Source: Obrimoposthia wandeli
Lineage: Eukaryota
Direction of reading: 5' to 3'
DNA: 64,000 bases
NCBI GenBank assembly: GCA_977020255.1
Contig: CDROCS010001674.1
Location: 124,001 to 188,000, forward strand
Position 1 is the stretch's first letter. Each line of letters starts with the position of its first letter. Both the position numbers and the translations under genes were made by a program. The notes below the pieces were generated by a model. The model saw only the letters and a list, made by a program, of their open reading frames with translations, was not told the DNA's origin and searched no databases. Shown here piece after piece: positions 9,965 through 23,982 of the stretch.

Positions 9965-10960
9965 CTATTTGTTAATAAGCTCATTGCCTGACAGCGTATT
10001 ACGACCAAATAATAAAATATTGTTGAGGGTCGTATCAGCAATATTGCCCAGTGCTTCTTCTGTTAGAAATGCTTGGTGTCCAGTGAATAAGACGTTGTGA
10101 CATGAAGATAAACGTCTAAATACATCATCTTTAATCACATCATTTGATTTATCTTGAAAGAATAAATCCTGTTCATTTTCATAAACATCAATACCCAAAG
10201 AACCAATTCTACTGGCTTTCAATGCTTCAATGGCATCGATAGAATTGAGTAGACCACCACGACTTGTGTTGATAATCATCACGCCATCACGCATTTGGTC
10301 AAAGGCATCGGCATTGAGCATATGATAATTTTCTTGGGTCATCGGGCAGTGCAAAGTAATCACATTGGCTTGGCGGTAGATATCTTCTAACGTGGTGTAA
10401 GTGACCCCTAATTCGATTGCAATAGGGTTTTCATACGGGTCGTAAGCAAGAATATTCATACCAAAGCCTTTGAGTATTCGAATTGTTGCAATACCTATTT
10501 TACCCGTTCCAATAACACCCACCGTTTTGCCATGAAAATTGAAGCCTGTTAACCCTTCTAAGGAAAAGTTAGCGTCACGAGTGCGTTGGTACGCACGGTG
10601 AATACGACGGTTTAAACTCAGCATAAGCCCAAGGGTATGCTCTGCAATGGCTTCTGGTGAATAGGCTGGAACACGAACAACTTGAATATTCAGTTTTTCA
10701 GCAGCATCAAGATCAACTTTATCAAAACCAGCACAGCGCATCGCAATGAGTCGAACACCGTGGTTGGCGAGTTCTTGAAGTACAGGTTGGCTTAAATCAT
10801 CGTTTACAAAAGCACAAACAGCATCGAACCCGTGCGCCATAACTGCCGTTTGTTGGGTTAAACGGAAATCAAAATATGTTAACTCATGCTGATAATGGCT
10901 ATTTATCAATTCAAAGGATTTTTGGTCATATTTTTTAGTGCTAAAGACTGCAACTTTCAT
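9965..10960 (-). CDS. ldhA: D-lactate dehydrogenase, NAD-dependent
   Basis: MKVAVFSTKKYD, RVPAYSP, GTGKIG, LHCP, INTSRG, TGHQAF; track start 10990. Confidence 0.93.
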   Translation of the reverse strand: MKVAVFSTKKYDQKSFELINSHYQHELTYFDFRLTQQTAVMAHGFDAVCAFVNDDLSQPVLQELANHGVRLIAMRCAGFDKVDLDAAEKLNIQVVRVPAYSPEAIAEHTLGLMLSLNRRIHRAYQRTRDANFSLEGLTGFNFHGKTVGVIGTGKIGIATIRILKGFGMNILAYDPYENPIAIELGVTYTTLEDIYRQANVITLHCPMTQENYHMLNADAFDQMRDGVMIINTSRGGLLNSIDAIEALKASRIGSLGIDVYENEQDLFFQDKSNDVIKDDVFRRLSSCHNVLFTGHQAFLTEEALGNIADTTLNNILLFGRNTLSGNELINK

Positions 10961-11035
10961 AAGGCTACCTTTTGGATAACTGTTATTCAATCGGATTAGT
11001 AAGCAAATACTTGACTAACCCGACAGGTTATTCTT

Positions 11036-11084: not shown

Positions 11085-11585
11085 TTAAATATCAGATAAA
11101 GATAAACGATTGTCGCTTAGCGCCTGCATGATACGTTCAGTATTAAGCACTCTGATCCATGGCATTAAGTCTTTCTCATTCTCAATGATGTAAGTGGTTA
11201 ATTGATCAATTACAATTTCTTTTAATTTGTCGCCATTCCAAGGTTTTGAGACATAAAAATCGAGGCTAGCATTATTGACGGCTTGTATTGTTTCTTCTAA
11301 TCCAGCTTGGCCTGTTAATAATACTTTACGGGCTTTTTTCGTTTCAGGTTGTTGCTTTAACTCAATTAAAAAATCGATACCTTTTTCGCCGGGCATTATG
11401 TGATCGCATAAGATCAACGCCAGCGGGATATGATCTGTAATAGCGTCAGCAAGTACTTCTTTGGCTTCATCGACAGATTCTGCCGCTTCGATCATGAAGT
11501 GCTCTTCAAGTATGGCGAGATCATGAAATACGCTGTCTAATACTTCTCGTTCATCATCGACGCATAGGATGAGGTATTTGTTCAT
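11085..11585 (-). CDS. Single-domain response regulator (REC) with short C-terminal tail
   Basis: ILCVDD, ILCDHIMPG (phospho-Asp), VLLTG, SKPW; no HTH. Confidence 0.9.
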   Translation of the reverse strand: MNKYLILCVDDEREVLDSVFHDLAILEEHFMIEAAESVDEAKEVLADAITDHIPLALILCDHIMPGEKGIDFLIELKQQPETKKARKVLLTGQAGLEETIQAVNNASLDFYVSKPWNGDKLKEIVIDQLTTYIIENEKDLMPWIRVLNTERIMQALSDNRLSLSDI

Positions 11586-11595
11586 ATGCTCTCCG

Positions 11596-13530
11596 TTAGC
11601 TGCTGTGGTTAATCGGCAGCGTTACAATCATTCGAGTGTATTTATCGGGTTCAGACTCAACCCGAATTTCTCCATTATGTTGGTTGATTATTTGTTGGCA
11701 AACCGACAAGCCAATACCCAGTCCGAAATTTCCTTCTCGCTTAGTGGTGTAATTTAATTCAAATATTTTTTTCTGTTGCTCTGGAAGAATGCCTTTGCCA
11801 TTGTCTTCGACAATAATGTCCATCAACTGCTTGTGACTACCGGGTGAAAATTGGGTTTTGATTCGAATTTCACCGGGTTCAGTAACTGCATCTAACGCGT
11901 TTGCAATTAGGTTGGTCCATACTTGCTGTAGTGCAATGGGTTGGCAAGTAAAAAGGGGAAATTGAGTATATTCTTTAATCACCTGATGGCGCTTTAAACG
12001 GTTATCAAAAATAACTAACGTATCTTCTATCCCTTCATGAACATCTACGGTGTGCGTACTTTCATCATCTTGTCTGGCATAACTTTTTAGGCTTTTGACT
12101 AAATCAGCAATACGTTGTGCGCAAACATTAATCGAGCGTAGAAAGTTGCCCATTTGATAATAGTTTTCCCATTCGCCCATCACTTCTTTTAATTGATTTT
12201 TTTGCGGTAATAGCCAGAGTGAAAGGTGCTCATGATCATCAATACCCATCTGAACCACTTTGCGTGCAAGTTGGCGATCACCCAGCTGGTTTTCTAATTG
12301 CCGTGCACGTTGGCGTGTTTCTGATGTGGATAACGGTCTCGATTGCATCGCTTGTTGCAGAATATGATTACCGCGTCTTTGGTTTTCTAAACTGAGCGTA
12401 GATTCAGTAAGCTTTCCGATAGTTTCTTGAAGTGTTTCACTGCCTCTTAAAATCGCAGATACCGGATTATTAAGCTCATGTGCAACACCTGCGACCAATT
12501 GACCGAGAATCGCCATTTTTTCTTGTTCAACAAGTTGTAAGTGAGCGTTATCGAGTGATTTTAACGTTTGCTGTAATCGTAGTTCCGTTTTAATACTGCC
12601 TTGTAAGCGACGATTAAAATTACGTAATAGAAGGTTGGTAAAAAGGGGTAATAGTTCATTACGTGAATTCATGACCTTGGTAAATAACTGACGATCAAGC
12701 TTGATTACGTCTGTCTTTCCTAGGGTGATAACGGTCGAAAATGAGGCTTCACCAGTTACAAAAGACATGCCTCCTACTAAATGCCCGGCACCAACGCGAA
12801 CAACCTCGTGTTTGCATCCTTCTTCATCTGCTTTATATAAAGCGACTTCCCCTTGAGTAATTAACCAGAGAAAATTATTCGATGTACCTTCTTTTGTTAA
12901 TAAGTGTCCTTCGCTATATGTGCGGCACGCTCGGCTTTCATCGTTACCATTAAAAAAGTCATGTAAAGCATCGGCTACTTGTTTTGCCAGTGCTGTGTCG
13001 TCAAGGCTGTTGGTCTTTTGAATAAAGCCGGATCGAAAATTAGACATCTGACTGTCAATATGGGCCTTAAGAATGCGGCGATGATCGAGAATGCGACTGT
13101 ACTGCAACCAATCTTCTTGCGGGTTTTTAAGAAGGTATGTCGTTAATTCTTTAATCAATACACGATTAAGCTCTTCTTTATTCCAAGGCTTGGTGAGGCA
13201 GTAATTGAGCCGACCTTCATTAACTGCCTGCATGATGGTATCAAGCTGAGGTTTATCATTAAGGAGAATAGTTCGGGCTTTTTTTGTTACAGGGTGTTGA
13301 TCTAGCTGAATAATAAAATCAACGCCATTTTCACTGCCTAGCTCGTTATCACAGATAACCATTGCCGCTCGTTGGTCATTTTGCGCGATAAACTCAAGTG
13401 TTTCATGCGCTTCCTCTATGCTTTCTGCACTAATAATATCGAACAGGTTAGCAAAAGGGACCAGCTCTCTGCTTAACTGTTCAATGATCCTTGGATCATC
13501 ATCAAGGCATAAAATGACAAAACTATTCAC
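11596..13530 (-). CDS. Cytoplasmic hybrid kinase: REC - cNMP-binding - HisKA - HATPase
   Basis: N-terminal ILCLDD/ICD/TKPW; GEVAL..VGGMSFV cNMP barrel; AGVAHELNNP H-box; QVWTNLIANA, DNGKGI, GLGIGLS; no TM segment. Confidence 0.85.
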   Translation of the reverse strand: MNSFVILCLDDDPRIIEQLSRELVPFANLFDIISAESIEEAHETLEFIAQNDQRAAMVICDNELGSENGVDFIIQLDQHPVTKKARTILLNDKPQLDTIMQAVNEGRLNYCLTKPWNKEELNRVLIKELTTYLLKNPQEDWLQYSRILDHRRILKAHIDSQMSNFRSGFIQKTNSLDDTALAKQVADALHDFFNGNDESRACRTYSEGHLLTKEGTSNNFLWLITQGEVALYKADEEGCKHEVVRVGAGHLVGGMSFVTGEASFSTVITLGKTDVIKLDRQLFTKVMNSRNELLPLFTNLLLRNFNRRLQGSIKTELRLQQTLKSLDNAHLQLVEQEKMAILGQLVAGVAHELNNPVSAILRGSETLQETIGKLTESTLSLENQRRGNHILQQAMQSRPLSTSETRQRARQLENQLGDRQLARKVVQMGIDDHEHLSLWLLPQKNQLKEVMGEWENYYQMGNFLRSINVCAQRIADLVKSLKSYARQDDESTHTVDVHEGIEDTLVIFDNRLKRHQVIKEYTQFPLFTCQPIALQQVWTNLIANALDAVTEPGEIRIKTQFSPGSHKQLMDIIVEDNGKGILPEQQKKIFELNYTTKREGNFGLGIGLSVCQQIINQHNGEIRVESEPDKYTRMIVTLPINHSS

Positions 13531-13716
13531 CCTTGTATCCTTATAAACTTCATTGGCTTTAAAAGTGTAGAATAATTCGCCATATTGGACTGAGAGCCAT
13601 CTAGCAAACCTGCAACTATTACCTCTTTACTGTTTGATTCATAGAGGATATCGATACCTCATTATCGTTGTTTGTAATAAACTAGCTGTGTTTATAAAAT
13701 TATTTTAGGAAGTGAT

Positions 13717-15027
13717 ATGTTGAAGAAAGCGGCTGCCGGTGCGGGTGCAGTATTAATTGTGCTGTGTTGGCCTTTTGCAACTGGCCAGATTGGAGAACGA
13801 ATTTATCTGGATACAGTCGGAAAATATGATAGCCCTTATGTAAGTATCACCAGTGAAAACTACGATCGTGGTTACTTGTCTTCTGATGTCGTTTCTCGTA
13901 TTGAAATCAAAGATGCATTTAAGCCTTTATTTGAAGAAGAAGGTTTGCCAACTGTTTGGCACATTGATAGCAAAGTGACGCATGGCGTATTTGGTATTTC
14001 ATCTAAAAGTCAGCTAGTACTTGATGATGATTTAAAACCGATTAGCGCTGAAATCTGGGGAGAAGGTGTCACACCTGTCACCTTTACGGCGTCAACAGCG
14101 CTTACACGTAAAACAGATTTTACGATCACGGTTAATCCTGTTTCTTATGTTGAAGAACTAGGGGCTAAAGCGGATATCAGTGCGCTAGTACTAAAAGGCA
14201 TGGTGGATGCGAAAGGTTATGGTGAATTTGAATACGCCTTACCAGAAGCGAAGCTTACTACGACTGCGAATGAAGCGATGGTGCTTAATGGTTTATCAGG
14301 CAGTGCGAAAGGCATGCTTGATGGTCAGTTCTGGATTGGTAATCAGGATTTTGCATTAAAAAGTGTTAGCTTTGTTGATCAGATAAATGAGATGCAAGTG
14401 TCTCTTGAAGACATGAGTGTTGGTATGAGCAACGTATTAACGCAAGCTGATGCGAAATCATCTGACACCAACGATCAGATAATGACCAATACCAATACTG
14501 CAACAATTGGTAAAATTGTGTCTTTAAATGGTGACGAATATACCAATCTGAACTTCAAATTAGCGTTCTCTGACTTGAATTATTCTGCGCTAAGCCGCTT
14601 GGGTGATATGGCTGATAATTTGAACGAAAATATGACCCCAGAGCAGGCGCAAGAAGCGGCATTAGCGCTTGATTTATTGGTTGCCAAAGGCTTAAAAATT
14701 AATCTTGAAGATTTAAGCGTTACAACCCCACAAGGTGATGTGAGTAGTCATATTACTTTAGGCGTTGCGCCTGGTCTTGCTCGTGCTTCTGAAAACATGG
14801 CTAACATTTCTGAAAAACTATCGGGTCAAATTAATTTAATTTTGCCTCAGGCAATTGTAGATCAAGATCCAATGCTTTTGGAAAGAGCCAAAATGATGGA
14901 GCAGGGTGGCGTGGTTGTACTTGAAGACGGAAACTATAAACTTCAAATGCAAATTAAAGGCGATCAAATTGTTCTAGCATCGGGTGATCAGTTACCGATT
15001 GCGATGTTATTGATGTTATTTATGTAA
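13717..15027 (+). CDS. YdgA / DUF945 family protein
   Basis: N-terminal anchor AGAVLIVLCWPFATG, YDRGYLSS, length ~440 aa. Confidence 0.75.
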   Translation: MLKKAAAGAGAVLIVLCWPFATGQIGERIYLDTVGKYDSPYVSITSENYDRGYLSSDVVSRIEIKDAFKPLFEEEGLPTVWHIDSKVTHGVFGISSKSQLVLDDDLKPISAEIWGEGVTPVTFTASTALTRKTDFTITVNPVSYVEELGAKADISALVLKGMVDAKGYGEFEYALPEAKLTTTANEAMVLNGLSGSAKGMLDGQFWIGNQDFALKSVSFVDQINEMQVSLEDMSVGMSNVLTQADAKSSDTNDQIMTNTNTATIGKIVSLNGDEYTNLNFKLAFSDLNYSALSRLGDMADNLNENMTPEQAQEAALALDLLVAKGLKINLEDLSVTTPQGDVSSHITLGVAPGLARASENMANISEKLSGQINLILPQAIVDQDPMLLERAKMMEQGGVVVLEDGNYKLQMQIKGDQIVLASGDQLPIAMLLMLFM

Positions 15028-15082
15028 GCACTTTGATGCAGCCAAGTCTCGCTGCTGAATAATGGCATGGTACATGCTGTAT

Positions 15083-15124
15083 CCCTTCTGTTTACTAATC
15101 ATTAGTGAGCAGAAGGGCTTTTTT
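15083..15124 (+). terminator. Terminator after ydgA-like gene
   Basis: CCCTTCTGTTTACTAAT-C-ATTAGTGAGCAGAAGGG then CTTTTTT. Confidence 0.7.
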
Positions 15125-15304
15125 ATACGTGAAAAACAGCTATTTCGTTGATTGATAGTTTTTAGCTATCAATAAAATTAGTAATTTCGATTTAGTGTTT
15201 TCAAGGAAATAGACGACACTTAGGTTATCGGAGCAGGTGTCCGGCAATAATAAAAAGGCTCGTAACTTGTTTATCTTGTTATAACAATAGGTTTTGGGGG
15301 ATGT

Positions 15305-15721
15305 ATGGAATCATTAAAAGTTAAAGATTATATGAATCGTCGACCAGTCACATTTGATAAGCATATGTCGCTATCGGTCGCGCTTGATAAGCTGCTCACT
15401 GCTAAGCAGATTGGTGGGCCAGTAATCGATGATCAAAAACGTGTTGTTGGCTTTTTGTCTGAACAAGATATGATTCATAAGCTATTGAAGGTGGGTTATC
15501 ACTGTCAAGATACGCACAATGTCAATGACTGCATGCGACCGGATGTACTGACTGTTTCACCTGAAGATTCAATTATTGAACTCGCAGAGGTAATGTCTGG
15601 TCAAAAACCAAAAATCTATCCAGTCGTTAATAATGGACAATTGGTTGGGGTGATCACTCGTCGTGATGTATTAACGGCAATTAGTACCCAGATTGGAGCA
15701 TGCTTTAAGCACCCAGTTTGA
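15305..15721 (+). CDS. Stand-alone CBS-pair protein
   Basis: GGPVID...VVGFLSEQD and YPVV..GQLVGVITRRD. Confidence 0.9.
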   Translation: MESLKVKDYMNRRPVTFDKHMSLSVALDKLLTAKQIGGPVIDDQKRVVGFLSEQDMIHKLLKVGYHCQDTHNVNDCMRPDVLTVSPEDSIIELAEVMSGQKPKIYPVVNNGQLVGVITRRDVLTAISTQIGACFKHPV

Positions 15722-15751
15722 TTTTAAGTCTATGACGATTAAGACAGTTAT

Positions 15752-15776
15752 AAAAAGGCGCTTTGTGCGCCTTTTT
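15752..15776 (+). terminator. Terminator after CBS gene
   Basis: AAAAAGGCGC-TTTGT-GCGCCTTTTT. Confidence 0.8.
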
Positions 15777-15816
15777 AGGATCGGGCAATAACGACAGAGA
15801 TGAATGTATCAAGTGG

Positions 15817-15981
15817 TAATACCAATCTAGATAAGTTTCTGATCATCCTTGCTGGTTAAAATCACTTATAACTACGTTAGAAATTTTATAATTAGAGCCA
15901 CTATTCACTGCAATTTCTGTCTTGTTATTATCAATTTTTTCTGCGCAATTTTCTGACCATTTACTTACCTAGAATGGTATA
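15817..15981 (+). mobile_element. Family-1 MITE-like element, 165 bp, apparently full length
   Basis: Imperfect TIRs TAATACCAATCTAGATAAGT ... ACTTACCTAGAATGGTATA; body matches 28070-28235; no ORF. Confidence 0.8.
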
Positions 15982-16014
15982 AAAGCTGTTAACTATAAAA
16001 AGAATGGAGTGCAT

Positions 16015-17508
16015 GTGGCACAAACGTCAGAAGCGAAAGATCCCTCACATAACACGCACGCGAAGTTTGTAACTGGCTCGCCCATGCGCCACATTGTCGT
16101 CATGTCAGGCACTGGGGCTATTGGTTTAATGGCACTGTTCTTGGTCGATCTACTCGACATGCTGTTTATTAGTATGTTGGGTGAGGTTGAACTTGCGGCA
16201 GCTATTGGTTTCGCGGGCACATTAGTTTTCTTTTCGATATCAGCTTCTATTGGTACCTCTATTGCGGCTGGTGCACTTGTTTCAAGGGCGTTAGGCGCAC
16301 AAAAGCGCGATGAAGCTAGAATACTAACTGTTAATGTGATGATATTTGCCTTTATCATCAGCGCAATTCTAGTAACGGTTATGCTTTGGCAGCTGCCAGT
16401 ATTATTAAGCATGATTGGTGCGAAAGGGCGCGTAGCTGAAGTTGCTACCCAATATTTGGTTATCTTACTGCCGAGCGCCCCTTTAATAGCTATTTCAATG
16501 TCAGCGGGGGCTGCACTTCGTGGAGTCGGGGATGCCCGACGCTCTATGGTCGCTACATTAATTGGTGGCGGTGTAAACGCAATATTGGACCCAATACTCA
16601 TATTTGGGTTATCAATGGGGGTGCAAGGGGCGGCAATTGCATCAGTCTTTGCGCGTTTAGCGGTAATGATCTTTTCGCTCTATGCGGTTATTTACAAGCA
16701 TAACCTAGTGGCAAAACCAGACTTTAGTGTCTTTAAATCATACATTCCAACCATATATAAAATTGCTATTCCTGCCATATTAACCAATACCGCAACACCA
16801 ATAGGTAATGCCATTGTTACCAGTAATATTGCTCAATTTGGTGAGAATTATGTCGCGGGCTACGCTGTGATTGGTCGAATCATGCCAGTATGTTTCGCGT
16901 TGGTTTTCTCATTATCTGGTGCGGTTGGCCCTATTATTGGACAAAACTTCGGGGCAGGTCATTGGGATCGTATTAATCGCACGTTACGCGACGCGATGTT
17001 ATTTACCTCTCTCTATTGTGTCTTGGTCTCAATTCTATTGTGGCTAGGGCAAGATTTGCTTATTGGTATGTTTAGTCTACAAGGTGATTCCGCCGAAATT
17101 GTGATGATCTTTTGTTCTTTTGTGGCGATTACCTTCATTTTTAATGGTGCGCTGTTTGTGGCAAATGCTGCTTTCAATAACTTAAATCGTCCTACATGGT
17201 CAACGGCATTGAATATGGGTAAAGCAACTATAGGTACGATTCCATTTGTTATTCTTGGTGGTCAACTTGCAGGCGCTGGTGGAGTATTAATGGGTCAGGC
17301 GGTAGGCTCTATTGTGTTCGGTGTCTTGGGCTATTTTTTAGTGATTCGCCAAGTAAAAAAAATGGGGCAAGATCATGAACATAAACAGCAAGAATTGGAA
17401 GTGCTAGAGCCAAGTATACCAATGACACCATTTTGTTCTTCTCGTACTTATATGGCATCAGAAGATGTACTGGAAGAGACCTTAAACAAGGAAACTAAAT
17501 CGCAATAA
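16015..17508 (+). CDS. MATE-family efflux transporter
   Basis: ~12 TM, VDLLDMLFIS, LRGVGDARR, NAILDPILIFG; GTG 16015 is better spaced from GGAG than track start 16009. Confidence 0.9.
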   Translation: MAQTSEAKDPSHNTHAKFVTGSPMRHIVVMSGTGAIGLMALFLVDLLDMLFISMLGEVELAAAIGFAGTLVFFSISASIGTSIAAGALVSRALGAQKRDEARILTVNVMIFAFIISAILVTVMLWQLPVLLSMIGAKGRVAEVATQYLVILLPSAPLIAISMSAGAALRGVGDARRSMVATLIGGGVNAILDPILIFGLSMGVQGAAIASVFARLAVMIFSLYAVIYKHNLVAKPDFSVFKSYIPTIYKIAIPAILTNTATPIGNAIVTSNIAQFGENYVAGYAVIGRIMPVCFALVFSLSGAVGPIIGQNFGAGHWDRINRTLRDAMLFTSLYCVLVSILLWLGQDLLIGMFSLQGDSAEIVMIFCSFVAITFIFNGALFVANAAFNNLNRPTWSTALNMGKATIGTIPFVILGGQLAGAGGVLMGQAVGSIVFGVLGYFLVIRQVKKMGQDHEHKQQELEVLEPSIPMTPFCSSRTYMASEDVLEETLNKETKSQ

Positions 17509-17690
17509 TGTCTTTAGTGATTAAATAAGTTCGTATTGAAACTCAGATGTAATAGTAACTGATATGCACTTCTAACGAACATCACAGCACCAATGCCATG
17601 AATAGAATCTACCCGAGCGCTTTTAACAATATTTGTTGAAGGCGCTTTTTGTTGAAAGTACTTTTGTTTATATAGCGATTTTCAGTTAAA

Positions 17691-17735
17691 GGTGACATAA
17701 GTCACGGTTTGAGCCTGTTTGTGATTTAGATCTCT
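17691..17735. promoter_or_regulatory. Two candidate CRP sites upstream of the SLC13 operon
   Basis: GGTGA-N6-TCACG (17691-17706) and TGTGA-N6-TCTCT (17720-17735). Confidence 0.45.
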
Positions 17736-18083
17736 ATTTTTACCACTTTCCTGATTTAATTCCTTGTATATGAACAATCGGAATTATAAGTAATTCATTA
17801 AAACTTACTTACATTTTACAAAATCATTGATCTATAACGGAGACAAATACCCCTTTTACACTCAAAATGAATACTACTAAAATATTTGATTAGTTGTTGA
17901 TTATGGTTAGGTTATCAAATCAGCAATGAAATACAGCTTTCGATGTCATTTCAACAACAAAAACGACTATTTATATGTTCAATACCAACGTTGTATTGCG
18001 TGAGAATAATAAATGGCCATAAAGGAATAGACCGAAGCTGTACACAACAGATTCATTTTTTGTTTTAAGGGAATAACACCATT

Positions 18084-19499
18084 ATGCGTCAGTACATGAA
18101 GTACATAATACCAATTTTAATTCCACTCATTATCTTATTACTACCAGCGTCAGCATTTCCTGTTGAAGGGCTTACTATTATTCAACAACGTGTTATCGCT
18201 ATTTTCTTACTGGCTGCATTATGTTGGGTACTTGAACCAATCCCTATCTATGCAACGTCAGTGGTTATTATTGTACTTGAGCTGTTATTGCTTTCTGATA
18301 AAGGGTTATACCTGTTCCGTCAGGATGAGGGGCAAGCACATTTCGGTGAATTATTAGTGTCTAGCGACATTATGGCAACGTTCTCTAGCCCTATTATTAT
18401 GTTGTTTTTAGGGGGCTTTTTCCTTGCAATGGCGGCAACCAAATACCGCCTTGACGTTAACCTTGCGCGTGTACTGTTAAAGCCGTTTGGTACCCAGCCT
18501 AAATATGTCATGTTCGGACTGATGTTGATCACCGCTATTTTTTCGATGTTTATGTCGAATACCGCCACCACGGCGATGATGCTGTCTATTCTTGCGCCAG
18601 TCATTGCGTTATTTGGCGTGAAAGATCCGGGTAAAATAGCCTTTGCACTTTGTGTACCTGTTGCTGCGAATATTGGTGGTATTGGTACGCCGATTGGCAC
18701 CCCACCGAATGCGATCGCATTGAAGTATATATCAGAAGATAACATGATCTCGTTTGGAGAATGGATGTTCTTTGGTGTGCCTTTTGTCGCTATCTTACTC
18801 GTATTTGCATGGTTTCTTATCAACTACCTTTACCCAGCTAAGCAAGAGAAAATTGAACTGACCATTAAGGGTAAGTTTCTTAAAACACCGAAAGCAATCA
18901 CGGTATACATTACTTTTGGTTTAACCATTTTATTGTGGTTAATGGGTTCATCACACGGTATGAATTCTTACACTGTTGCACTTATCCCTGTCGCGATATT
19001 TTCATTAACAGGCATCATCAATAAAGAAGATCTGAAGAAGATTTCTTGGGATGTGCTTTGGTTAGTTTCTGGTGGTATCGCGCTTGGTTTAGCACTTGAT
19101 CAAACGGGGTTAGCTCGCCTTATGGTGAATAGCATCCCATTTGATAACTACTCGCCATATGTTGTGTTAGCGGGGGCTGCGGTATTGTGTTTATTGATGG
19201 CCAACTTCATGTCTCATACGGCAACGGCTAACTTGTTAATGCCAATAATGGCGGCGTTAGGCACATCCATGACCTCACTCACGCCATTGGGTGGTGAAAT
19301 CACACTTATTCTAGTAGTTACTTTTGCGGCTTCTCTTGGTATGTCTTTACCTATTAGTACGCCACCGAATGCGTTAGCGCATGCGACAGGTCATGTTCAA
19401 AGTAATCAGATGGCACGTGTAGGTGTCATTATTGGTATTGTTGGTGTGCTAATGAGTTTCGTGATGATTTGGTTATTACACCTTATTGATCATATTTAA
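18084..19499 (+). CDS. SLC13/DASS (divalent anion:Na+ symporter) family permease
   Basis: MFMSNTATT, PIGTPPN, FMSHTAT, LPISTPPNA hairpin motifs. Confidence 0.9.
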   Translation: MRQYMKYIIPILIPLIILLLPASAFPVEGLTIIQQRVIAIFLLAALCWVLEPIPIYATSVVIIVLELLLLSDKGLYLFRQDEGQAHFGELLVSSDIMATFSSPIIMLFLGGFFLAMAATKYRLDVNLARVLLKPFGTQPKYVMFGLMLITAIFSMFMSNTATTAMMLSILAPVIALFGVKDPGKIAFALCVPVAANIGGIGTPIGTPPNAIALKYISEDNMISFGEWMFFGVPFVAILLVFAWFLINYLYPAKQEKIELTIKGKFLKTPKAITVYITFGLTILLWLMGSSHGMNSYTVALIPVAIFSLTGIINKEDLKKISWDVLWLVSGGIALGLALDQTGLARLMVNSIPFDNYSPYVVLAGAAVLCLLMANFMSHTATANLLMPIMAALGTSMTSLTPLGGEITLILVVTFAASLGMSLPISTPPNALAHATGHVQSNQMARVGVIIGIVGVLMSFVMIWLLHLIDHI

Positions 19500-19519
19500 T
19501 AAGTGCTTAAAGGGGTGTA

Positions 19520-20848
19520 TTGATGCATCAACCGAAGGCTTTACAGCGTATTGTCGATGTTTATTTTAGTCACAGCGCACGAACGGTTTCTGTTCGCGCA
19601 GGTACGCAGGTCTTAAAGCAAGATGGCTTTAACGACAAATTGTACTGGGTTAAAAGAGGAGAGCTATCGGGCTCTCTTCAAAATGAAACCAGTGGTCTTA
19701 CGGCAAAAGTATTTCGCGTTGAACAAGGTATGTTTTTTGGTGTGCATAGTTATTTTGCGCAAACATTAATGGCATCAACCACGGTAATTGCAGAGAAAGA
19801 CAGTGAAATTGCGTGGATTGATTTAAACACTAAAGCCGTCGAGCCTGAAATCTACGGCTCATTGGTTGAGCAGTTTATGCCAGTGATGGTCCATGAATTA
19901 GCGCAGCGCCAAATGTTGACTGGGTTAGAGGCAATAGAAAAAGAACAAGCATTACAAAAACTGTATGCCGCTGAACAAATGACCACTCTAGGTCAACTTG
20001 CCGCAGGTATTGCTCATGAATTGAATAATGCCGTGGGAGTATTAAGCAGTAAAACAGAAGGTGTTCAGAATTCTATTTGTCGTTTTATTGACGAAAATAA
20101 GCCAGAAGTATCGCCATTTTTAGACTCCGGTATTTGTGATGGACAATCTGCTACATCTGCTGAAGTTCGCAAACGAGCGAAGATCCTGCAAGAGATGTAT
20201 CGGTTGGATCGTGACCAAGCTCGACAATTAGCGCGAGCGGTACCACAGGGGGATATACCTGACTTATGGCTTACCAATTTGGATGAAGCCTTACAATATT
20301 GGGATATAGGGCGTGATCTTCATGACATGCGTTTAGCCGGTAAACATGCCGCAAGTATTGTTCGTTCCGTTAAACAGCTAGGAGGGAGCGATCAAGCGCG
20401 TCAGCCAAATGTCGATGTGAATGACACCATCCATAAGTCTTTGGCTTTACTGCAAAGTAATTTACGCCGTGTAAATGTTGTATTGCGACCAGCTGTATTG
20501 CCAACCATTAATGCGAGTGTGACAGAGTTAGTACAGGTGTGGGTTAACATCATTAAAAACGCCTGTGATGCCATGGAATATACGGATGATCCGCATATAG
20601 AAATTATTACCCGTTGTTCGAAAAATCGATTATTAATCACGATTAGTAATAACGGGCCTGTTATAGAAGAAGTGACTCGACGAAAAATTTTCCAACCAAA
20701 CTTCACCACCAAAAAAGGGGGGTTGTCGTTTGGCTTAGGGCTGGGATTATCTATTGTGCAACGTATCGTACAGAGTTATGGCGGTACGATTGCACTTAAA
20801 AGTGATTCAGAAAAAACAAAATTTCGAATTAAGCTGCCTATTGCGTAG
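19520..20848 (+). CDS. Cytoplasmic kinase: cNMP-binding - HisKA - HATPase
   Basis: LYWVKRGEL..FFGVHSYF cNMP barrel; AGIAHELNN; QVWVNIIKNA, NNGP, GLGLGLS; no TM. Confidence 0.85.
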   Translation: MMHQPKALQRIVDVYFSHSARTVSVRAGTQVLKQDGFNDKLYWVKRGELSGSLQNETSGLTAKVFRVEQGMFFGVHSYFAQTLMASTTVIAEKDSEIAWIDLNTKAVEPEIYGSLVEQFMPVMVHELAQRQMLTGLEAIEKEQALQKLYAAEQMTTLGQLAAGIAHELNNAVGVLSSKTEGVQNSICRFIDENKPEVSPFLDSGICDGQSATSAEVRKRAKILQEMYRLDRDQARQLARAVPQGDIPDLWLTNLDEALQYWDIGRDLHDMRLAGKHAASIVRSVKQLGGSDQARQPNVDVNDTIHKSLALLQSNLRRVNVVLRPAVLPTINASVTELVQVWVNIIKNACDAMEYTDDPHIEIITRCSKNRLLITISNNGPVIEEVTRRKIFQPNFTTKKGGLSFGLGLGLSIVQRIVQSYGGTIALKSDSEKTKFRIKLPIA

Positions 20849-20858
20849 AAGGACGGTT

Positions 20859-21332
20859 ATGGAAAAGTTAAATATCATCTGTGTAGATGACCAGAGGGAA
20901 GTGCTTAGCGCTGTGCTTAAAGATTTAGCACCGTTAAATGATTATTTTCATGTTGAAGACTGTGAATCGGCTGATGAAGCATTAGAGCTTATGGACGAGC
21001 TAGATGCAGAAGGCGAGTATATCGCGTTAGTTATTTCAGACCATGTTATGCCAGGGAAAACGGGTGTCGAGTTACTAACAGAGATATCGCAAGATTCACG
21101 TTTTCTTCGTACGAAGAAAGTATTGCTAACAGGGCAAGCAACCCATCAAGATACGATTGCAGCAATAAACCGCGCCCGTATTGAGAGCTATTTTGAAAAA
21201 CCGTGGAAAGCAGAAGTTTTACTGACATCTGCACGCAGTCTAATCACCGAGTATATATTTGATATGGGTTTAGACTACCAACCTTGGACTGACATACTGG
21301 ATAACGGTGTTATCTTTAGGCGCTTACGCTAG
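20859..21332 (+). CDS. Single-domain response regulator (REC) with short C-terminal tail
   Basis: IICVDD, VISDHVMPG, VLLTGQA, EKPW; ATG 20859 after GAAGGA (track start 20754 overlaps the kinase). Confidence 0.9.
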   Translation: MEKLNIICVDDQREVLSAVLKDLAPLNDYFHVEDCESADEALELMDELDAEGEYIALVISDHVMPGKTGVELLTEISQDSRFLRTKKVLLTGQATHQDTIAAINRARIESYFEKPWKAEVLLTSARSLITEYIFDMGLDYQPWTDILDNGVIFRRLR

Positions 21333-21370: not shown

Positions 21371-21402
21371 AAAAAGCCAAAATAATTTATTTTGGCTTTT
21401 TT
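21371..21402 (+). terminator. Terminator of SLC13-kinase-REC operon
   Basis: AAAAAGCCAAAATAA-TT-TATTTTGGCTTTTTT. Confidence 0.75.
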
Positions 21403-21495: not shown

Positions 21496-23982
21496 ATGTG
21501 TGCTCAATGCAATAATAAAAAACCTCATATCCATAGTATTAAACCAACAGCGGTGCAGAGTAACTCTGTTCAAGTAGAAGCGTGTGCATCAACAGATTGT
21601 TGTAGTGCAACAAATACCGCGACTGTTGTATCAACTGAAACAGAAAATAATGGCGATGGTGATTCAAATACTGAAGGCCCTGCCTCCAGTTTACCTTATC
21701 GTCATGATGTTTCGCCTACTCGTCAGCATTCGCATTCAAAGAGTGAACAGCATGATCATCAACGTGACCCTGTAAGTGAAAGTAGCTGTTCAACATCTTG
21801 CTGTAGTACATCTAACGTTTCGTTAGAGCAGCAGAAAGAAGAAGAAAAAAAGTGTGAAGAACAGCTAACGCAATCAAATTTAGGCCATAGCCAAAGCTGG
21901 AAAGTACTGGGTATGGATTGTCCAAGCTGTGCGAGCAAACTTGAAAAGTCACTCATGACCCTTGATGGCGTCGAACGTGCCAAGGTGATGTTTGCAACAG
22001 AAAAGTTGGTGGTAAATTGTCAGTCAGCCGATATGGTAGAAGCGATTGAAGCCAAAGCGAAAAAAACAGGGTTCCAATTAGTTACTGGGCGTAAAGCGCA
22101 ACAAAAACAAGAAAAACCTCACTTTATAAAGCAAAATTTAGCGGTTATTACCATTGCAAGCATGATGGCGGTGTCATTTCTGATAAGCCAAGCATCTGAG
22201 CAAATGGGCTTAATCGCGTTCACTCTGACCAGCATTTTAGGTTTATTCCCAATAGCTAAAAAAGCGGTTGTATTAGCTAAATCTGGCACACCATTTTCGA
22301 TTGAAACCTTGATGAGCATTGCAGCCATTGGTGCATTGTACTTAGGTGAAACCGCTGAAGCGGCAATGGTGTTGTTATTATTTCTTATCGGGGAACAACT
22401 GGAAGGATACGCCTCGGCACGTGCACGGAGTGGTGTAAAAGCCTTGATGGATCTTGTACCAGAAGAAGCAACGGTTATTCGTGCTGATGGCACAAGGGTG
22501 AAGGTTGCTGCCGAAGATCTACAGAAAGGCGATGTAATTGAAGTAGCTCCGGGCTCACGTTTGCCTGCTGATGCACAGTTGCTTGATATTATTGCTAGCT
22601 TTGATGAAAGTGCGCTCACGGGTGAATCGGTTCCGGTTGAACATATTCCCGGCGAGAAAGTCATGGCTGGCTCGCTAGTGGCAGATAAAGTGGTGCGCTT
22701 AACCATCATTTCAGAGCAAGGTGAGAACGCCATTGATCGGATTCTACATCTGATTGAAGATGCAGAATCACGTAAAGCGCCACTTGAGCGCTTTTTAGAC
22801 CGCTTTAGTCGCTGGTACACTCCGGCAATGATCGTATTTTCTGCTTTGGTTATTGTGATTCCACCTTTGTTATTCGCACAATCTTGGGATGAGTGGATCT
22901 ACCGAGGCTTAACATTGCTATTGATTGCGTGTCCATGTGCATTAGTGATTTCAACACCAGCTGCCATTACGTCTGGATTAGCGGCCGCTGCACGACGAGG
23001 CGCTTTAATTAAAGGTGGTGCAGCGTTAGAGCAATTAGGTCACATTGAAACTATTGCCTTTGATAAAACAGGAACATTAACGCAGGGTAAACCTGTAATG
23101 ACAGACCTTGTAAGCTGGGATGGCGACGACGATAAACTGTTGGCGCAATCTGCTGCGGTTGAAATGGGTTCATTACACCCTTTGGCAATGGCGGTTGTAA
23201 AAGCCGCACAAGATCGTGGCTTAACGGTTATTGAAGCGGCAGAGCGTGAAGCATTACCTGGGCGCGGTATACAGGGGATCATAAATGGTGAGATTGTATT
23301 GCTCTGTGCAGCAGACCGGTTAACAGAATCCGTTACATTAACTGACGAGCATAACAAGCAAATCTTAGCGTTAGAAGCGCAAGGTAAAACATTGGTTGTA
23401 GTGGTGCGGGATGGCATTGCTGTTGGCATGATCGCATGGCGTGACAACTTACGTGATGATGCCGTTCAAGCGGTATCTGCGCTGAAGAAAATGGGTATAA
23501 AGGCCATAATGTTAACGGGGGATAACCCACGAGCTGCTGCTGCCATTGCGGGCGAAATTGGTATTGATTACCGTGCAGGCTTGCTGCCTGCTGATAAAGT
23601 GACAGAAGTACAACTCGCGAATGAAAAATCGCATGTTGCTATGGTGGGTGATGGTATTAATGATGCACCAGCAATGAAAACGGCTTCGATTGGTATCGCC
23701 ATGGGCGGCGGAACAGATGTGGCCCTAGAAACTGCAGATGCAGCGCTTACCCATAACCGTTTATCAGAGTTGCCGGTGATGATTGAGCTATCTAAAGCGA
23801 CTTTAAATAATATTCGCCAAAATATTGGGCTGGCATTAGGTCTGAAAGCGATTTTCTTAGTGACAACGTTATTGGGTTTAACCGGATTGTGGGTGGCTGT
23901 ATTAGCTGACAGTGGTGCGACCGCGTTAGTGACATTGAATGCACTAAGATTGCTTCGTTTTGAACCAAAGAATAAAGTTTAA
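21496..23982 (+). CDS. zntA: Zn/Cd/Pb-exporting P1B-ATPase
   Basis: GMDCPSC, TGES, CPC, DKTGT, GDGINDAP, LADSG. Confidence 0.93.
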   Translation: MCAQCNNKKPHIHSIKPTAVQSNSVQVEACASTDCCSATNTATVVSTETENNGDGDSNTEGPASSLPYRHDVSPTRQHSHSKSEQHDHQRDPVSESSCSTSCCSTSNVSLEQQKEEEKKCEEQLTQSNLGHSQSWKVLGMDCPSCASKLEKSLMTLDGVERAKVMFATEKLVVNCQSADMVEAIEAKAKKTGFQLVTGRKAQQKQEKPHFIKQNLAVITIASMMAVSFLISQASEQMGLIAFTLTSILGLFPIAKKAVVLAKSGTPFSIETLMSIAAIGALYLGETAEAAMVLLLFLIGEQLEGYASARARSGVKALMDLVPEEATVIRADGTRVKVAAEDLQKGDVIEVAPGSRLPADAQLLDIIASFDESALTGESVPVEHIPGEKVMAGSLVADKVVRLTIISEQGENAIDRILHLIEDAESRKAPLERFLDRFSRWYTPAMIVFSALVIVIPPLLFAQSWDEWIYRGLTLLLIACPCALVISTPAAITSGLAAAARRGALIKGGAALEQLGHIETIAFDKTGTLTQGKPVMTDLVSWDGDDDKLLAQSAAVEMGSLHPLAMAVVKAAQDRGLTVIEAAEREALPGRGIQGIINGEIVLLCAADRLTESVTLTDEHNKQILALEAQGKTLVVVVRDGIAVGMIAWRDNLRDDAVQAVSALKKMGIKAIMLTGDNPRAAAAIAGEIGIDYRAGLLPADKVTEVQLANEKSHVAMVGDGINDAPAMKTASIGIAMGGGTDVALETADAALTHNRLSELPVMIELSKATLNNIRQNIGLALGLKAIFLVTTLLGLTGLWVAVLADSGATALVTLNALRLLRFEPKNKV

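Follow-up and report, generated by a model that had tools for sequence, protein, structure and literature searches.

A soluble cNMP-fold kinase and a tailed receiver encoded with a DASS carrier in Photobacterium: candidate two-component control of a transporter

C4-dicarboxylate two-component systems (DcuS-DcuR with DctA or DcuB, and DctB-DctD with DctA) are functionally tied to an anion carrier that serves as co-sensor; the kinases DcuS and DctB sit in the membrane and sense through periplasmic domains, and DcuR and DctD are transcription factors. Stand-alone receivers such as CheY (on FliM), DivK and CpdR act through protein contact, and to our knowledge neither these nor the receiver that activates a phosphoglycosyl transferase targets a secondary transporter. 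The last of these examples dates from 2025 (PMC12802240). In GlnK-AmtB and SbtB-SbtA, a small cytoplasmic PII-fold signal protein, controlled by uridylylation or nucleotides and encoded beside the transporter, plugs it (PMC10710835). No two-component case, response regulator or receiver appears in a 2023 review of how transporters are controlled after translation. The locus described here shares with the first group the tie between a two-component system and an anion carrier, with the second (as we propose) a single-domain regulator with protein-protein output, and with the third a small cytoplasmic signal protein that is conserved beside a transporter gene and whose state of modification would determine binding. 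At the same time, its kinases K1 and K2 are soluble, its receivers REC1 and REC2 lack a DNA-binding domain, and its signal protein is a CheY-fold receiver, presumably under a histidine kinase. A conserved receiver tail and a matching insert in the His-bearing helical hairpin (DHp) of the kinases set this family apart from CheY, DivK and CpdR.

The window, that is, the whole stretch of 64,000 nt that we analysed, comes from a Photobacterium of the profundum/frigidiphilum group. On its minus strand, K1 (11596-13530, 644 aa) and, 10 nt after it, REC1 (11085-11585, 166 aa) lie upstream of ldhA (9965-10990; D-lactate dehydrogenase family, Pfam 2-Hacid_dh_C/2-Hacid_dh), with 94 nt between REC1 and ldhA. 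Separately, on the plus strand, the gene for a DASS (SLC13-type) carrier (18084-19499, 471 aa), K2 (19523-20848) and REC2 (20859-21332, 157 aa) form a terminator-bounded operon with gaps of 20 nt and 10 nt. Its boundaries come from a consensus scan only: a terminator-like hairpin after a MATE gene upstream (17615-17647, plus strand) and, downstream of REC2, a palindromic hairpin of terminator type with A-run, stem and T-run (21371-21401); the same kind of scan places a promoter-like site at 17855-17883. All the features listed by an initial annotation of this DNA are present where it had placed them. When the ORFs between 9965 and 23982 were searched with Pfam and NCBIfam, none contained an HTH, GGDEF, EAL or Hpt domain, which bears out the annotated receiver without DNA-binding or enzymatic output and, given the missing Hpt domain, disallows the term 'phosphorelay' in its strict sense. 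Despite there being no predicted terminator between REC1 and ldhA in the consensus scan, ldhA is probably context outside the kinase/receiver system, since the P. phosphoreum group has it beside DUF945 with no K1/REC1 there, and Aliivibrio has it convergent to REC2.

Both kinases are soluble and carry a cNMP-fold sensor, as had been proposed: neither contains a transmembrane-like segment, and Pfam cNMP_binding matches both (E of 6e-14 for K1 and 1.5e-5 for K2). K1 begins with a REC-like domain (13126-13530; Response_reg E 3e-9), the third receiver implied by the initial annotation, followed on the same minus strand by a tail (13006-13125), the cNMP-fold (12661-12999), His351 (12478-12480), the DHp insert (12235-12405) and the catalytic domain (11611-12054). 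K2 probably starts with the ATG at 19523, not at 19520, which gives 441 aa and matches its orthologues; with residues counted from 19520, it has a cNMP-fold domain (1-118), His166 on a long helix (20015-20017), a helical insert at about 194-253 (20099-20278), a second DHp helix (254-288) and a catalytic domain (295-440). The annotated trio of cNMP, HisKA and HATPase is complete in K1; in K2, Pfam calls HATPase_c and cNMP_binding and makes no HisKA call, the H-box IAHELNN with His166 nonetheless being present. The catalytic residues are intact. In the kinases (AlphaFold2 models of mean pLDDT 80.5 for K1 and 91 for K2) the folded insert caps the tip of the DHp, and the top fold match of K2, the ZraS cytoplasmic core (9jfj), has no equivalent of it. 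K1 and K2 are indeed paralogues with a common insert, being 29% identical (E 8e-35) across the cNMP-fold, DHp and catalytic regions, with the motifs STSETRQRAR (K1) and TSAEVRKRAK (K2) inside the alignment.

The two free-standing receivers are related as well, with 40% identity end to end (E 2e-40) and Response_reg matches at E 1.2e-12 (REC1) and 2.7e-14 (REC2). Their phosphorylation sites are intact (D10, D11, D61, T91 and K114 in REC2; D61 codons at 11403-11405 in REC1 and 21039-21041 in REC2), and a tail of ~35 residues, at 21216-21329 on the plus strand in REC2, is common to REC1, REC2 and the K1 N-terminal receiver. Asp61 of the latter is kept in this Photobacterium and retained in only 38 of 121 K1 orthologues, most Vibrio having Ser, Ala or Gly instead.

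The carrier matches Na_sulph_symp (E 7.5e-50) and TIGR00785 dass (269 bits, cutoff 198.6), and its hairpin-tip motifs, SNT (158) and SHT (377), align with SNT/SNT in VcINDY and SNV/SHT in Pho90. It is 80-98% identical across Vibrionaceae, a conservation above that of K2. As to its substrate, neighbours hint at phosphate (pst/phoU, PHO4) and also at metabolism of C4 compounds (pyruvate carboxylase, PEPCK, co-expression with frd).

Similar modules do occur in other Vibrionaceae, as anticipated: K1/REC1 and DASS-K2-REC2 are both conserved there, a pattern far beyond chance. In all 79 Vibrionaceae-type loci with upstream sequence, Shewanella and Aliagarivorans copies included, K2 is directly preceded by DASS and followed by REC2. 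Ten P. phosphoreum-group species that retain DASS-K2-REC2 have no K1/REC1 between ldhA and DUF945, which there adjoin directly. Kinase homologues at 27-44% identity also adjoin the same DASS subfamily (in those compared, L085, L087, L092 and L094, it shares 52-63% identity with the DASS of the window), in the orders DASS-HK-REC, HK-REC-DASS and DASS-REC-HK; L116 adds a fourth order, REC-DASS-HK. The reverse search started from metagenomic DASS sharing 55% identity or more with that of the window and found a kinase and/or receiver adjacent at 40 of 44 informative loci (28 with both, five with a kinase at a contig end, seven with a receiver and no kinase) and four carriers alone; among more distant DASS (<55% identity), 14 of 17 informative loci were alone. 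The window's DASS belongs to a subfamily genomically tied to the kinase/receiver pair, and the link to the carrier that the initial annotation drew is genuine and far stronger than it could have shown. The receiver is its closest genomic partner; in the commonest gene order it is the kinase, not the receiver, that adjoins DASS.

We give a probability of roughly one half to the reading that K1/REC1 and DASS-K2-REC2 are two independent, ancient paralogous modules of a widespread signalling family whose constant partner in genomes is one DASS subfamily, and in which the tailed receiver directly tunes its partner DASS and the kinases sense a metabolite other than a cyclic nucleotide. A soluble dimeric kinase would use its cNMP-fold to sense an intracellular small molecule, probably an anionic metabolite related to the carrier's substrate, autophosphorylate on His166 (K2) or His351 (K1), and pass the phosphate to Asp61 of the small tailed receiver; the receiver, having no output domain, would then bind the co-encoded DASS and tune transport post-translationally, for which the plugging seen in GlnK-AmtB and SbtB-SbtA may serve as a working model. 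DASS-K2-REC2 forms the complete unit in this genome, and K1/REC1 is a second pair of the same family with no transporter of its own here, which may feed the same carrier or another target. Adjacency gives no direction: the DASS might itself signal to the kinase, or do no more than provide its ligand. The four informative close DASS loci without either partner count against this reading, as does the commonest gene order.

For the V. cholerae orthologues, names and phenotypes have been published but no mechanism, so that the initial annotation's 'no characterised function' stands for the mechanism only (PMC10848872, PMC10237652, PMC4441509). VC1314-VC1315-VC1316 correspond to DASS-K2-REC2 in order, sizes and domains (80/55/68% identity); they rise jointly (8.8-11.4-fold), and frdABCD with them, in a ravA-viaA mutant, and deletion of VC1315-16 in that background alters aminoglycoside tolerance and envelope permeability (PMC10848872). 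VC1156(-7)/VC1155, which share the divergent DUF945 neighbour, correspond to K1/REC1. Aminoglycoside tolerance, outer-membrane permeability, vpsL and colonisation do not obviously point to transport. It is possible, though unlikely, that phosphorylated REC2 and REC1 target other proteins (such as c-di-GMP enzymes, biofilm or motility machinery) and that DASS, as co-sensor or ligand supplier, only imports or reports the signal read by the kinase. Consistent with these other targets, deletion of VC1156-7 raises vpsL transcription (PMC10237652), VC1155 insertions reduce rabbit colonisation (as cited in PMC4441509), the receivers are closest to HD-GYP-type receiver domains (the top NCBIfam match of REC2 is the receiver part of NosR/RpfG-type regulators), a related KPW-type receiver beside a tandem cNMP-fold kinase is fused to a pyridine-nucleotide-disulfide oxidoreductase (L093), and in Vibrionaceae no DASS lies near K1/REC1. 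On the other hand, such targets leave unexplained why receivers stay beside DASS where no kinase adjoins. Receivers with an intact DDDTK site do so at L108 (no kinase match in flanks of about 4 kb each side), L171 (absence confirmed by Pfam on all neighbours, about 4 kb each side), L114 (~0.75 kb upstream) and L126 (~0.2 kb upstream, ~2 kb downstream); at L126, L128 and L129 the flanks are short, and a kinase may lie just beyond the contig. Equally unexplained are the phosphorylation-dead receivers of L137 and L145, in which acidic pocket, Asp, Thr and Lys are gone and the tail motif and the position beside DASS persist (L137, a distant locus, combines its dead receiver and this DASS with a kinase of PAS type and a regulator of NtrC type).

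It is rather doubtful that the five proteins form one network, with K1 and K2 cross-phosphorylating three receivers and both branches converging on the same carrier. Kinases and receivers are each paralogous, no more than 6 kb separates the modules in Photobacterium and Parasalinivibrio, K1-type kinases are DASS-linked elsewhere (L094, L116) with K1 here lacking its own DASS, tandem cNMP-kinase-cNMP-kinase fusions occur, and the K1 N-terminal domain, a tailed receiver like those that stand alone beside DASS, could dock K1 on the carrier. However, in V. cholerae ~160 locus tags lie between the modules (VC1155-56 versus VC1314-16), the P. phosphoreum group has no K1/REC1 at the syntenic site and contributes no K1 to the best 120 K1 homologues, the two kinase types form old separate clades (SH-aLRT 100, quick tree), and the residues following His in DHp helix 1 differ. 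The five-protein system first proposed is not upheld as an obligate unit, and ancient paralogous modules are the best reading.

That K1 and K2 truly sense cAMP or cGMP, as the name of the Pfam family would imply, is improbable. By sequence, their top matches in the PDB are PKA/PKG regulatory domains and CAP, and a CRP ChIP peak upstream of VC1314 (PMC6050953) makes the DASS-K2-REC2 locus part of cAMP-linked physiology. At the same time, both cNMP-folds lack the Glu and Arg that contact the cyclic-nucleotide phosphate: the positions of CAP Glu72 and Arg82 (Glu/Arg in PKA) hold Gly and Ser in K1, and Val and Met/Ser in the K2 phosphate-binding cassette, FGVHSYFAQTLMASTT. Other, strongly conserved family motifs stand in their place: the K1 cassette GGMSFVTGExSFST is invariant among orthologues (n = 121), with several positions conserved in 121/121, and G73, S76, N37 and R129 are invariant over 33 diverse family members. 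The label 'cNMP kinase' is therefore doubtful.

VC1314-1316 were named zraP2-zraS2-zraR2 from phenotypes by Krin et al. 2023, who made no mention of the cNMP fold, of the first gene encoding a DASS or of the missing output domain (PMC10848872). The implied second ZraPSR-like envelope/zinc stress system is scarcely credible and Zra family membership is refuted, in spite of the VC1315-16 deletion phenotypes and a kinase core structurally closest to ZraS, because all three defining architectures are absent ('ZraP2' is a 12-plus-helix DASS carrier instead of a periplasmic chaperone, nothing in the kinase is membrane-embedded or periplasmic, and neither a sigma-54 ATPase nor a DNA-binding domain occurs in the regulator), NCBIfam ZraS scores 86-109 bits, far under the cutoff of 479, and zra2 mRNA is not induced by zinc (PMC10848872).

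Direct tuning of DASS by its tailed receiver remains our preferred reading, and the partnership of receiver and DASS across many bacteria suggests that, if this is true, a transporter is controlled through a two-component receiver, a form of switching so far undescribed.

One subfamily of DASS (SLC13-type) anion carriers is tightly associated in genomes with a kinase-receiver pair, most of all with the receiver. In the window, the carrier gene (18084-19499, plus strand; 471 aa) is the first of a trio, with the kinase K2 (19520/19523-20848, plus strand; cNMP_binding and HATPase_c, H-box present) starting 20 nt after it and the small receiver REC2 (20859-21332, plus strand; 157 aa, Response_reg only) 10 nt after K2. 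Terminator-like hairpins at 17615-17647 and 21371-21401 flank the trio on both sides, and metatranscriptome contigs from marine sediment span the operon and both gene junctions; such contigs are not proof of a single transcript, and DNA carry-over is possible. The paralogous pair lies on the minus strand: K1 (11596-13530; 644 aa; Response_reg, cNMP_binding, HisKA and HATPase_c in the domain scan) is followed 10 nt downstream by REC1 (11085-11585; 166 aa, Response_reg only), and 94 nt beyond REC1 lies ldhA (9965-10990, minus strand).

This ORF list and the domain scans agree with the gene and domain description in the initial annotation. K1 and K2 are 29% identical (E 8e-35) in an alignment that runs from the cNMP fold to the C-terminus and covers the insert motifs said to be common to both kinases, and REC1 and REC2, proposed to be related, are 40% identical (E 2e-40). 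Domain scans of the ORFs between 9965 and 23982 found no HTH, GGDEF or EAL domain, as had been claimed, and neither kinase has a membrane segment. On the other hand, the system had been called a phosphorelay, and in the sense of a multi-step His-Asp-His-Asp chain this does not hold, as none of the ORFs between 9965 and 23982 has an Hpt domain in the scans.

Three neighbours deserve mention. A DUF945 (YdgA-like) gene (13717-15027, plus strand) is divergent from K1, as it is in V. cholerae too, and it stays in place where K1/REC1 are absent. A stand-alone CBS-pair protein (15305-15721, plus strand; 138 aa) is encoded just upstream of the DASS operon; such a gene adjoins the operon, or is one MATE gene away, in Photobacterium, Thaumasiovibrio, Parasalinivibrio and several Vibrio loci, and is not found there in V. 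cholerae. Since CBS pairs are frequent regulators of transporters, this proximity could go beyond mere synteny. Directly after REC2 comes a ZntA-type Zn/Cd/Pb P-type ATPase (21496-23982, plus strand; NF008262, 1189 bits), also seen at this place in many Photobacterium and some Vibrio loci, which is of note as the V. cholerae orthologues of the module bear a zinc-system name (see below).

When 80 genome loci were retrieved with a K2-family profile, DASS lay immediately upstream and REC2 downstream of K2 in 79/79 loci having upstream sequence (including one DASS gene frameshifted in a MAG; one further contig was truncated), so that the link to the transporter put forward in the initial annotation stands in a neighbourhood survey. 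Proteins of Photobacterium frigidiphilum, indicum and profundum match K2 at 97-98% identity, and within the Vibrionaceae-type trio the carrier is the most conserved member, at 80-98% identity versus 55-97% for K2. We also found the trio outside Vibrionaceae, in Shewanella canadensis/atlantica and Aliagarivorans marinus, where DASS is 83-84% identical to that of the window, which suggests horizontal transfer of the entire unit. A Vibrio-like CBS-DASS-K2-REC2-ZntA arrangement on a contig binned as a Marinifilaceae MAG (L054), with the DASS gene in three frames, is likely due to mis-binning and long-read frameshifts.

The association was also visible from the transporter side, in 80 metagenomic loci collected with a profile of linked carriers and scanned with purpose-built HMMs. 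Among carriers sharing 55% or more identity with the window's DASS, 28 loci had kinase and receiver, 5 had a kinase at the contig end, 7 had a receiver without a kinase, 4 had the carrier alone despite adequate flanks and 8 were uninformative; below 55% identity, the carrier stood alone in 14/17 informative loci. A kinase without a receiver was seen in none of the informative transporter-side loci. Considering that close carriers are mostly linked and the others mostly alone, the kinase/receiver association is subfamily-specific, and both directions of search show it.

In several loci the receiver directly adjoins the carrier with no kinase. At L171 (pepN, DASS, REC, cysZ, zipA, ligA) a gene-by-gene check of about 4 kb per side found no kinase, and at L114 (DASS-REC-DASS) none was found in about 4 kb downstream and in the only ~0.75 kb of sequence upstream. 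The receivers of these loci retain the DDDTK phosphorylation site (D10 D11 D61 T91 K114 in REC1 and REC2). Two further loci, L137 and L145, have a DASS-adjacent receiver in which the pocket, Asp, Thr and Lys are gone while the conserved C-terminal tail persists; the one at L137 comes after a PAS kinase and an NtrC-type regulator.

The kinase architecture is widespread. Full-length K2-like proteins formed about 100 half-identity clusters in an exhaustive search, with Atlas hints at the phylum level to Pseudomonadota, Bacteroidota, Balneolota and Verrucomicrobiota. Distant homologues occur as DASS-HK-REC at 44%, 36% and 32% identity, HK-REC-DASS at 30% and DASS-REC-HK at 27%, and at 34% as HK-REC without DASS (HK, kinase). 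K1-type kinases elsewhere can have REC and then DASS behind them, or follow in the order REC-DASS-kinase (L116). Four linked carriers that we compared belong to one subfamily, with 52-63% identity to the window's DASS. A quick, midpoint-rooted tree separated K1-type and K2-type clades (SH-aLRT 100 each), and each clade includes DASS-linked kinases. Tandem fusions of two cNMP-fold kinases, of about 970 aa, were also seen (P0336 at L093, P0346 and P0351); at L093 a KPW-type receiver fused to a pyridine-nucleotide-disulfide oxidoreductase precedes the fusion kinase, and contractile-sheath genes (Pvc16_N, phage sheath) come after it.

REC1 and REC2 both carry the full D10 D11 D61 T91 K114 site and, behind the receiver fold, a C-terminal tail with the approximate pattern L-T-x-Y/F-I/V ... 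Y/W ... L-D ... L. The 29 metagenomic kinase-linked receivers had DDDTK, or in three cases EDDTK, and one was truncated by the contig end. Judged by these residues, the receivers are phosphorylatable proteins with a family-specific tail and no output domain.

The carrier itself is a clear DASS/SLC13 member (TIGR00785 269 bits, cutoff 198.6; E 3.5e-41 against VcINDY). Hints at its substrate conflict: hairpin-tip motif 1 is SNT, as in VcINDY, versus a motif 2 that in Vibrionaceae is SHT, as in Pho90, and in some kinase-linked relatives SNT, and neighbours of distant homologues include pst/phoU, PHO4, pyruvate carboxylase, PEPCK and cysZ. FNR and CRP sites (up to 2 mismatches) occurred upstream of DASS in 42/77 and 40/77 loci versus 28 and 20 in shuffles, at no conserved position, and were given no weight.

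Both kinases have the DHp histidine and the N, G1, F and G2 boxes of HisKA-type kinases, and are soluble enzymes that look catalytically competent. The H-box histidines (His166 in K2, His351 in K1) are invariant, and so are N343/N347 of the N box and the F and G2 boxes. The K2 G1 box in Vibrionaceae is NNGP(E/M/V)I, with Asn instead of Asp in 121/121; we do not read this as inactivation, because T. maritima ThkA has the same Asn and its catalytic domain was solved with ADP (3a0t). An AlphaFold2 model of K2 (49-sequence alignment, pLDDT 91) has a beta-barrel cNMP fold at 1-118 (strands 22-100), a long helix at 120-193 bearing His166, four short helices at 195-252, the second helix of the DHp hairpin at 254-288 and the catalytic domain behind. 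Since the four short helices lie between the DHp helices, the 'unusual insert' of the kinases is predicted to be a folded helical element capping the hairpin. Its R217 occurs in 90% or more of the 49 diverse K2-type sequences, and in the K1-type insert P399, S401 and T402 are conserved family-wide and R406 is invariant. Foldseek, queried with the whole kinase, gave no structural precedent for the insert, only ordinary kinase cores, with the ZraS cytoplasmic domain best. K1 follows the K2 plan with a receiver and tail in front (AlphaFold2, pLDDT 80.5), though a pTM of 0.40 is too uncertain for the packing of this receiver on the kinase.

Taken jointly, these observations are consistent with a soluble kinase that would read an intracellular anionic metabolite and a receiver-with-tail that would bind the DASS carrier and modulate transport, the tail and the DHp insert perhaps being the recognition surfaces of the family. 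We put the probability of this reading at roughly 0.5. A little short of an even chance is what we would give to tailed receivers being dedicated subunits of the DASS subfamily, where phosphorylation by the kinase would switch binding and gate anion uptake within seconds, and where kinase-less lineages would retain the receiver, even a dead one, as a constitutive partner. The main rival keeps the same input and sends the receiver to other targets, for example c-di-GMP enzymes; the carrier would then supply the ligand or serve as co-sensor. The closest curated match of the receivers is the receiver part of HD-GYP-type regulators; at the same time, receivers adjoin the carrier where the kinase is missing, and we consider the rival rather unlikely.

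Less probable still is a joint network of both modules. The initial annotation had proposed a five-protein system, and as an obligate unit this fails: ten P. phosphoreum-group species have ldhA right beside DUF945, with K1/REC1 missing from this syntenic site and DASS-K2-REC2 intact, and no K1 of the group is among the best 120 K1 homologues. Both modules are core genes of Vibrionaceae, and K1/REC1 lie within 6-7 kb of the K2 module only in Photobacterium and Parasalinivibrio. A non-obligate network is kept as a doubtful possibility because the N-terminal domain of K1, a receiver-plus-tail unit like REC1 and REC2, could dock K1 on the same carrier. Its Asp61 is present here and in 38/121 orthologues, whereas most Vibrio have Ser, Ala or Gly in its place; the acidic pair has decayed too, and the domain is thus a pseudo-receiver in much of the K1 family. 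ldhA, downstream of REC1 in Photobacterium, is convergent and right after REC2 in ten Aliivibrio loci; its linkage to the modules may come from rearranged gene order or point to a functional connection with fermentation.

The kinases had also been described as cNMP-binding. The fold is there (Pfam PF00027; PDB sequence matches to PKA/PKG/CAP; the K2 model), but the canonical Gly-Glu...Arg-(Ser/Thr/Ala) phosphate-binding cassette was not found in K1 or K2: where PKA and CAP have Glu, K1 has Gly and K2 has Val, and at their Arg position K1 has Ser and K2 has Met/Ser. These substitutes are kept, near-invariant, throughout the kinase family (K1 GGMSFVTGExSFST, K2 GVHSFFSxTxxASST), and N37, G46, G73 and S76, together with R129 on the long helix, are invariant in 33 diverse cNMP-fold domains. 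Because cassette contacts have given way to conserved family motifs, the sensor likely has a specific ligand other than a cyclic nucleotide, and true cAMP/cGMP sensing seems very unlikely. The FGV.S motif had raised the idea that 2-oxoglutarate is bound as in NtcA; this was rejected, the NtcA profile match being weak (E 9e-4) and equalled by other CRP/FNR proteins.

The genes themselves are not new, since the loci carry annotation wherever they occur and some have been named. V. cholerae has the K2 module as VC1314-VC1316, beside MCP, VirK/MipA and an OmpR-type pair, and the K1 module as VC1156(-7)/VC1155, beside DUF945 and near tfoX. VC1314-16 are up 8.8-11.4-fold together with frdABCD in a ravA-viaA mutant, and deletion of VC1315-16 in that background altered both the permeability of the envelope and the tolerance of aminoglycosides (Krin et al. 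2023, PMC10848872). Between VC1313 and VC1314 there is a CRP ChIP peak (PMC6050953); its reported sequence (locus L073), ATTGATGTCACTCAAA, includes TTGATGTCACTCAA, one mismatch from the FNR-type TTGAT-N4-ATCAA, which fits the co-induction with frdABCD. vpsL transcription is up on VC1156-7 deletion (PMC10237652), and VC1155 insertions reportedly lowered rabbit colonisation, as cited in PMC4441509. The statement that no function had been characterised is thus right only in part, as names and phenotypes are published and a mechanism is not.

The name zraP2S2R2 was given because the kinase is 35% identical to ZraS (PMC10848872). ZraS, however, is a membrane kinase with a periplasmic sensor, whereas K2 lacks a hydrophobic segment, begins with the cNMP-fold barrel and scores 85.8 bits with the NCBIfam ZraS model against a cutoff of 479. 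ZraR combines a receiver with a sigma-54 AAA+ ATPase and a DNA-binding domain, unlike the single-domain, 157-aa REC2, and ZraP is a small periplasmic zinc-binding chaperone, whereas the first gene here encodes the 471-aa carrier. With all three comparisons failing, a Zra-type reading is ruled out as to family membership, and the published name of this module is misleading.

What is new is the recognition of the conserved triad and of the receiver-carrier pair at its core, with variants that lack the kinase or are phosphorylation-dead, together with the degenerate nucleotide cassette and the clash with the Zra name. Two-component systems are nearly always taken as transcription switches, and post-translational control of bacterial transporters is rarely known: a 2023 review of the subject covers PII proteins, EIIA-Glc and others and mentions no response regulators, receivers or two-component systems. 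Here, a three-gene unit found in several bacterial phyla joins a putatively kinase-controlled receiver to a relative of the human SLC13 citrate, dicarboxylate and sulfate transporters. If our reading is true, the transporter would be controlled in a new way, and this would be the first case of a two-component response regulator with direct control over a secondary transporter. Vibrio cholerae and other vibrios have the orthologues among their core genes, and mutants are affected in their tolerance of aminoglycosides, the permeability of the envelope, the expression of biofilm genes and colonisation of the gut, all of which lack a mechanism; the antibiotic-tolerance phenotypes of V. cholerae 'Zra2' would then be re-explained as a transport or metabolic effect.
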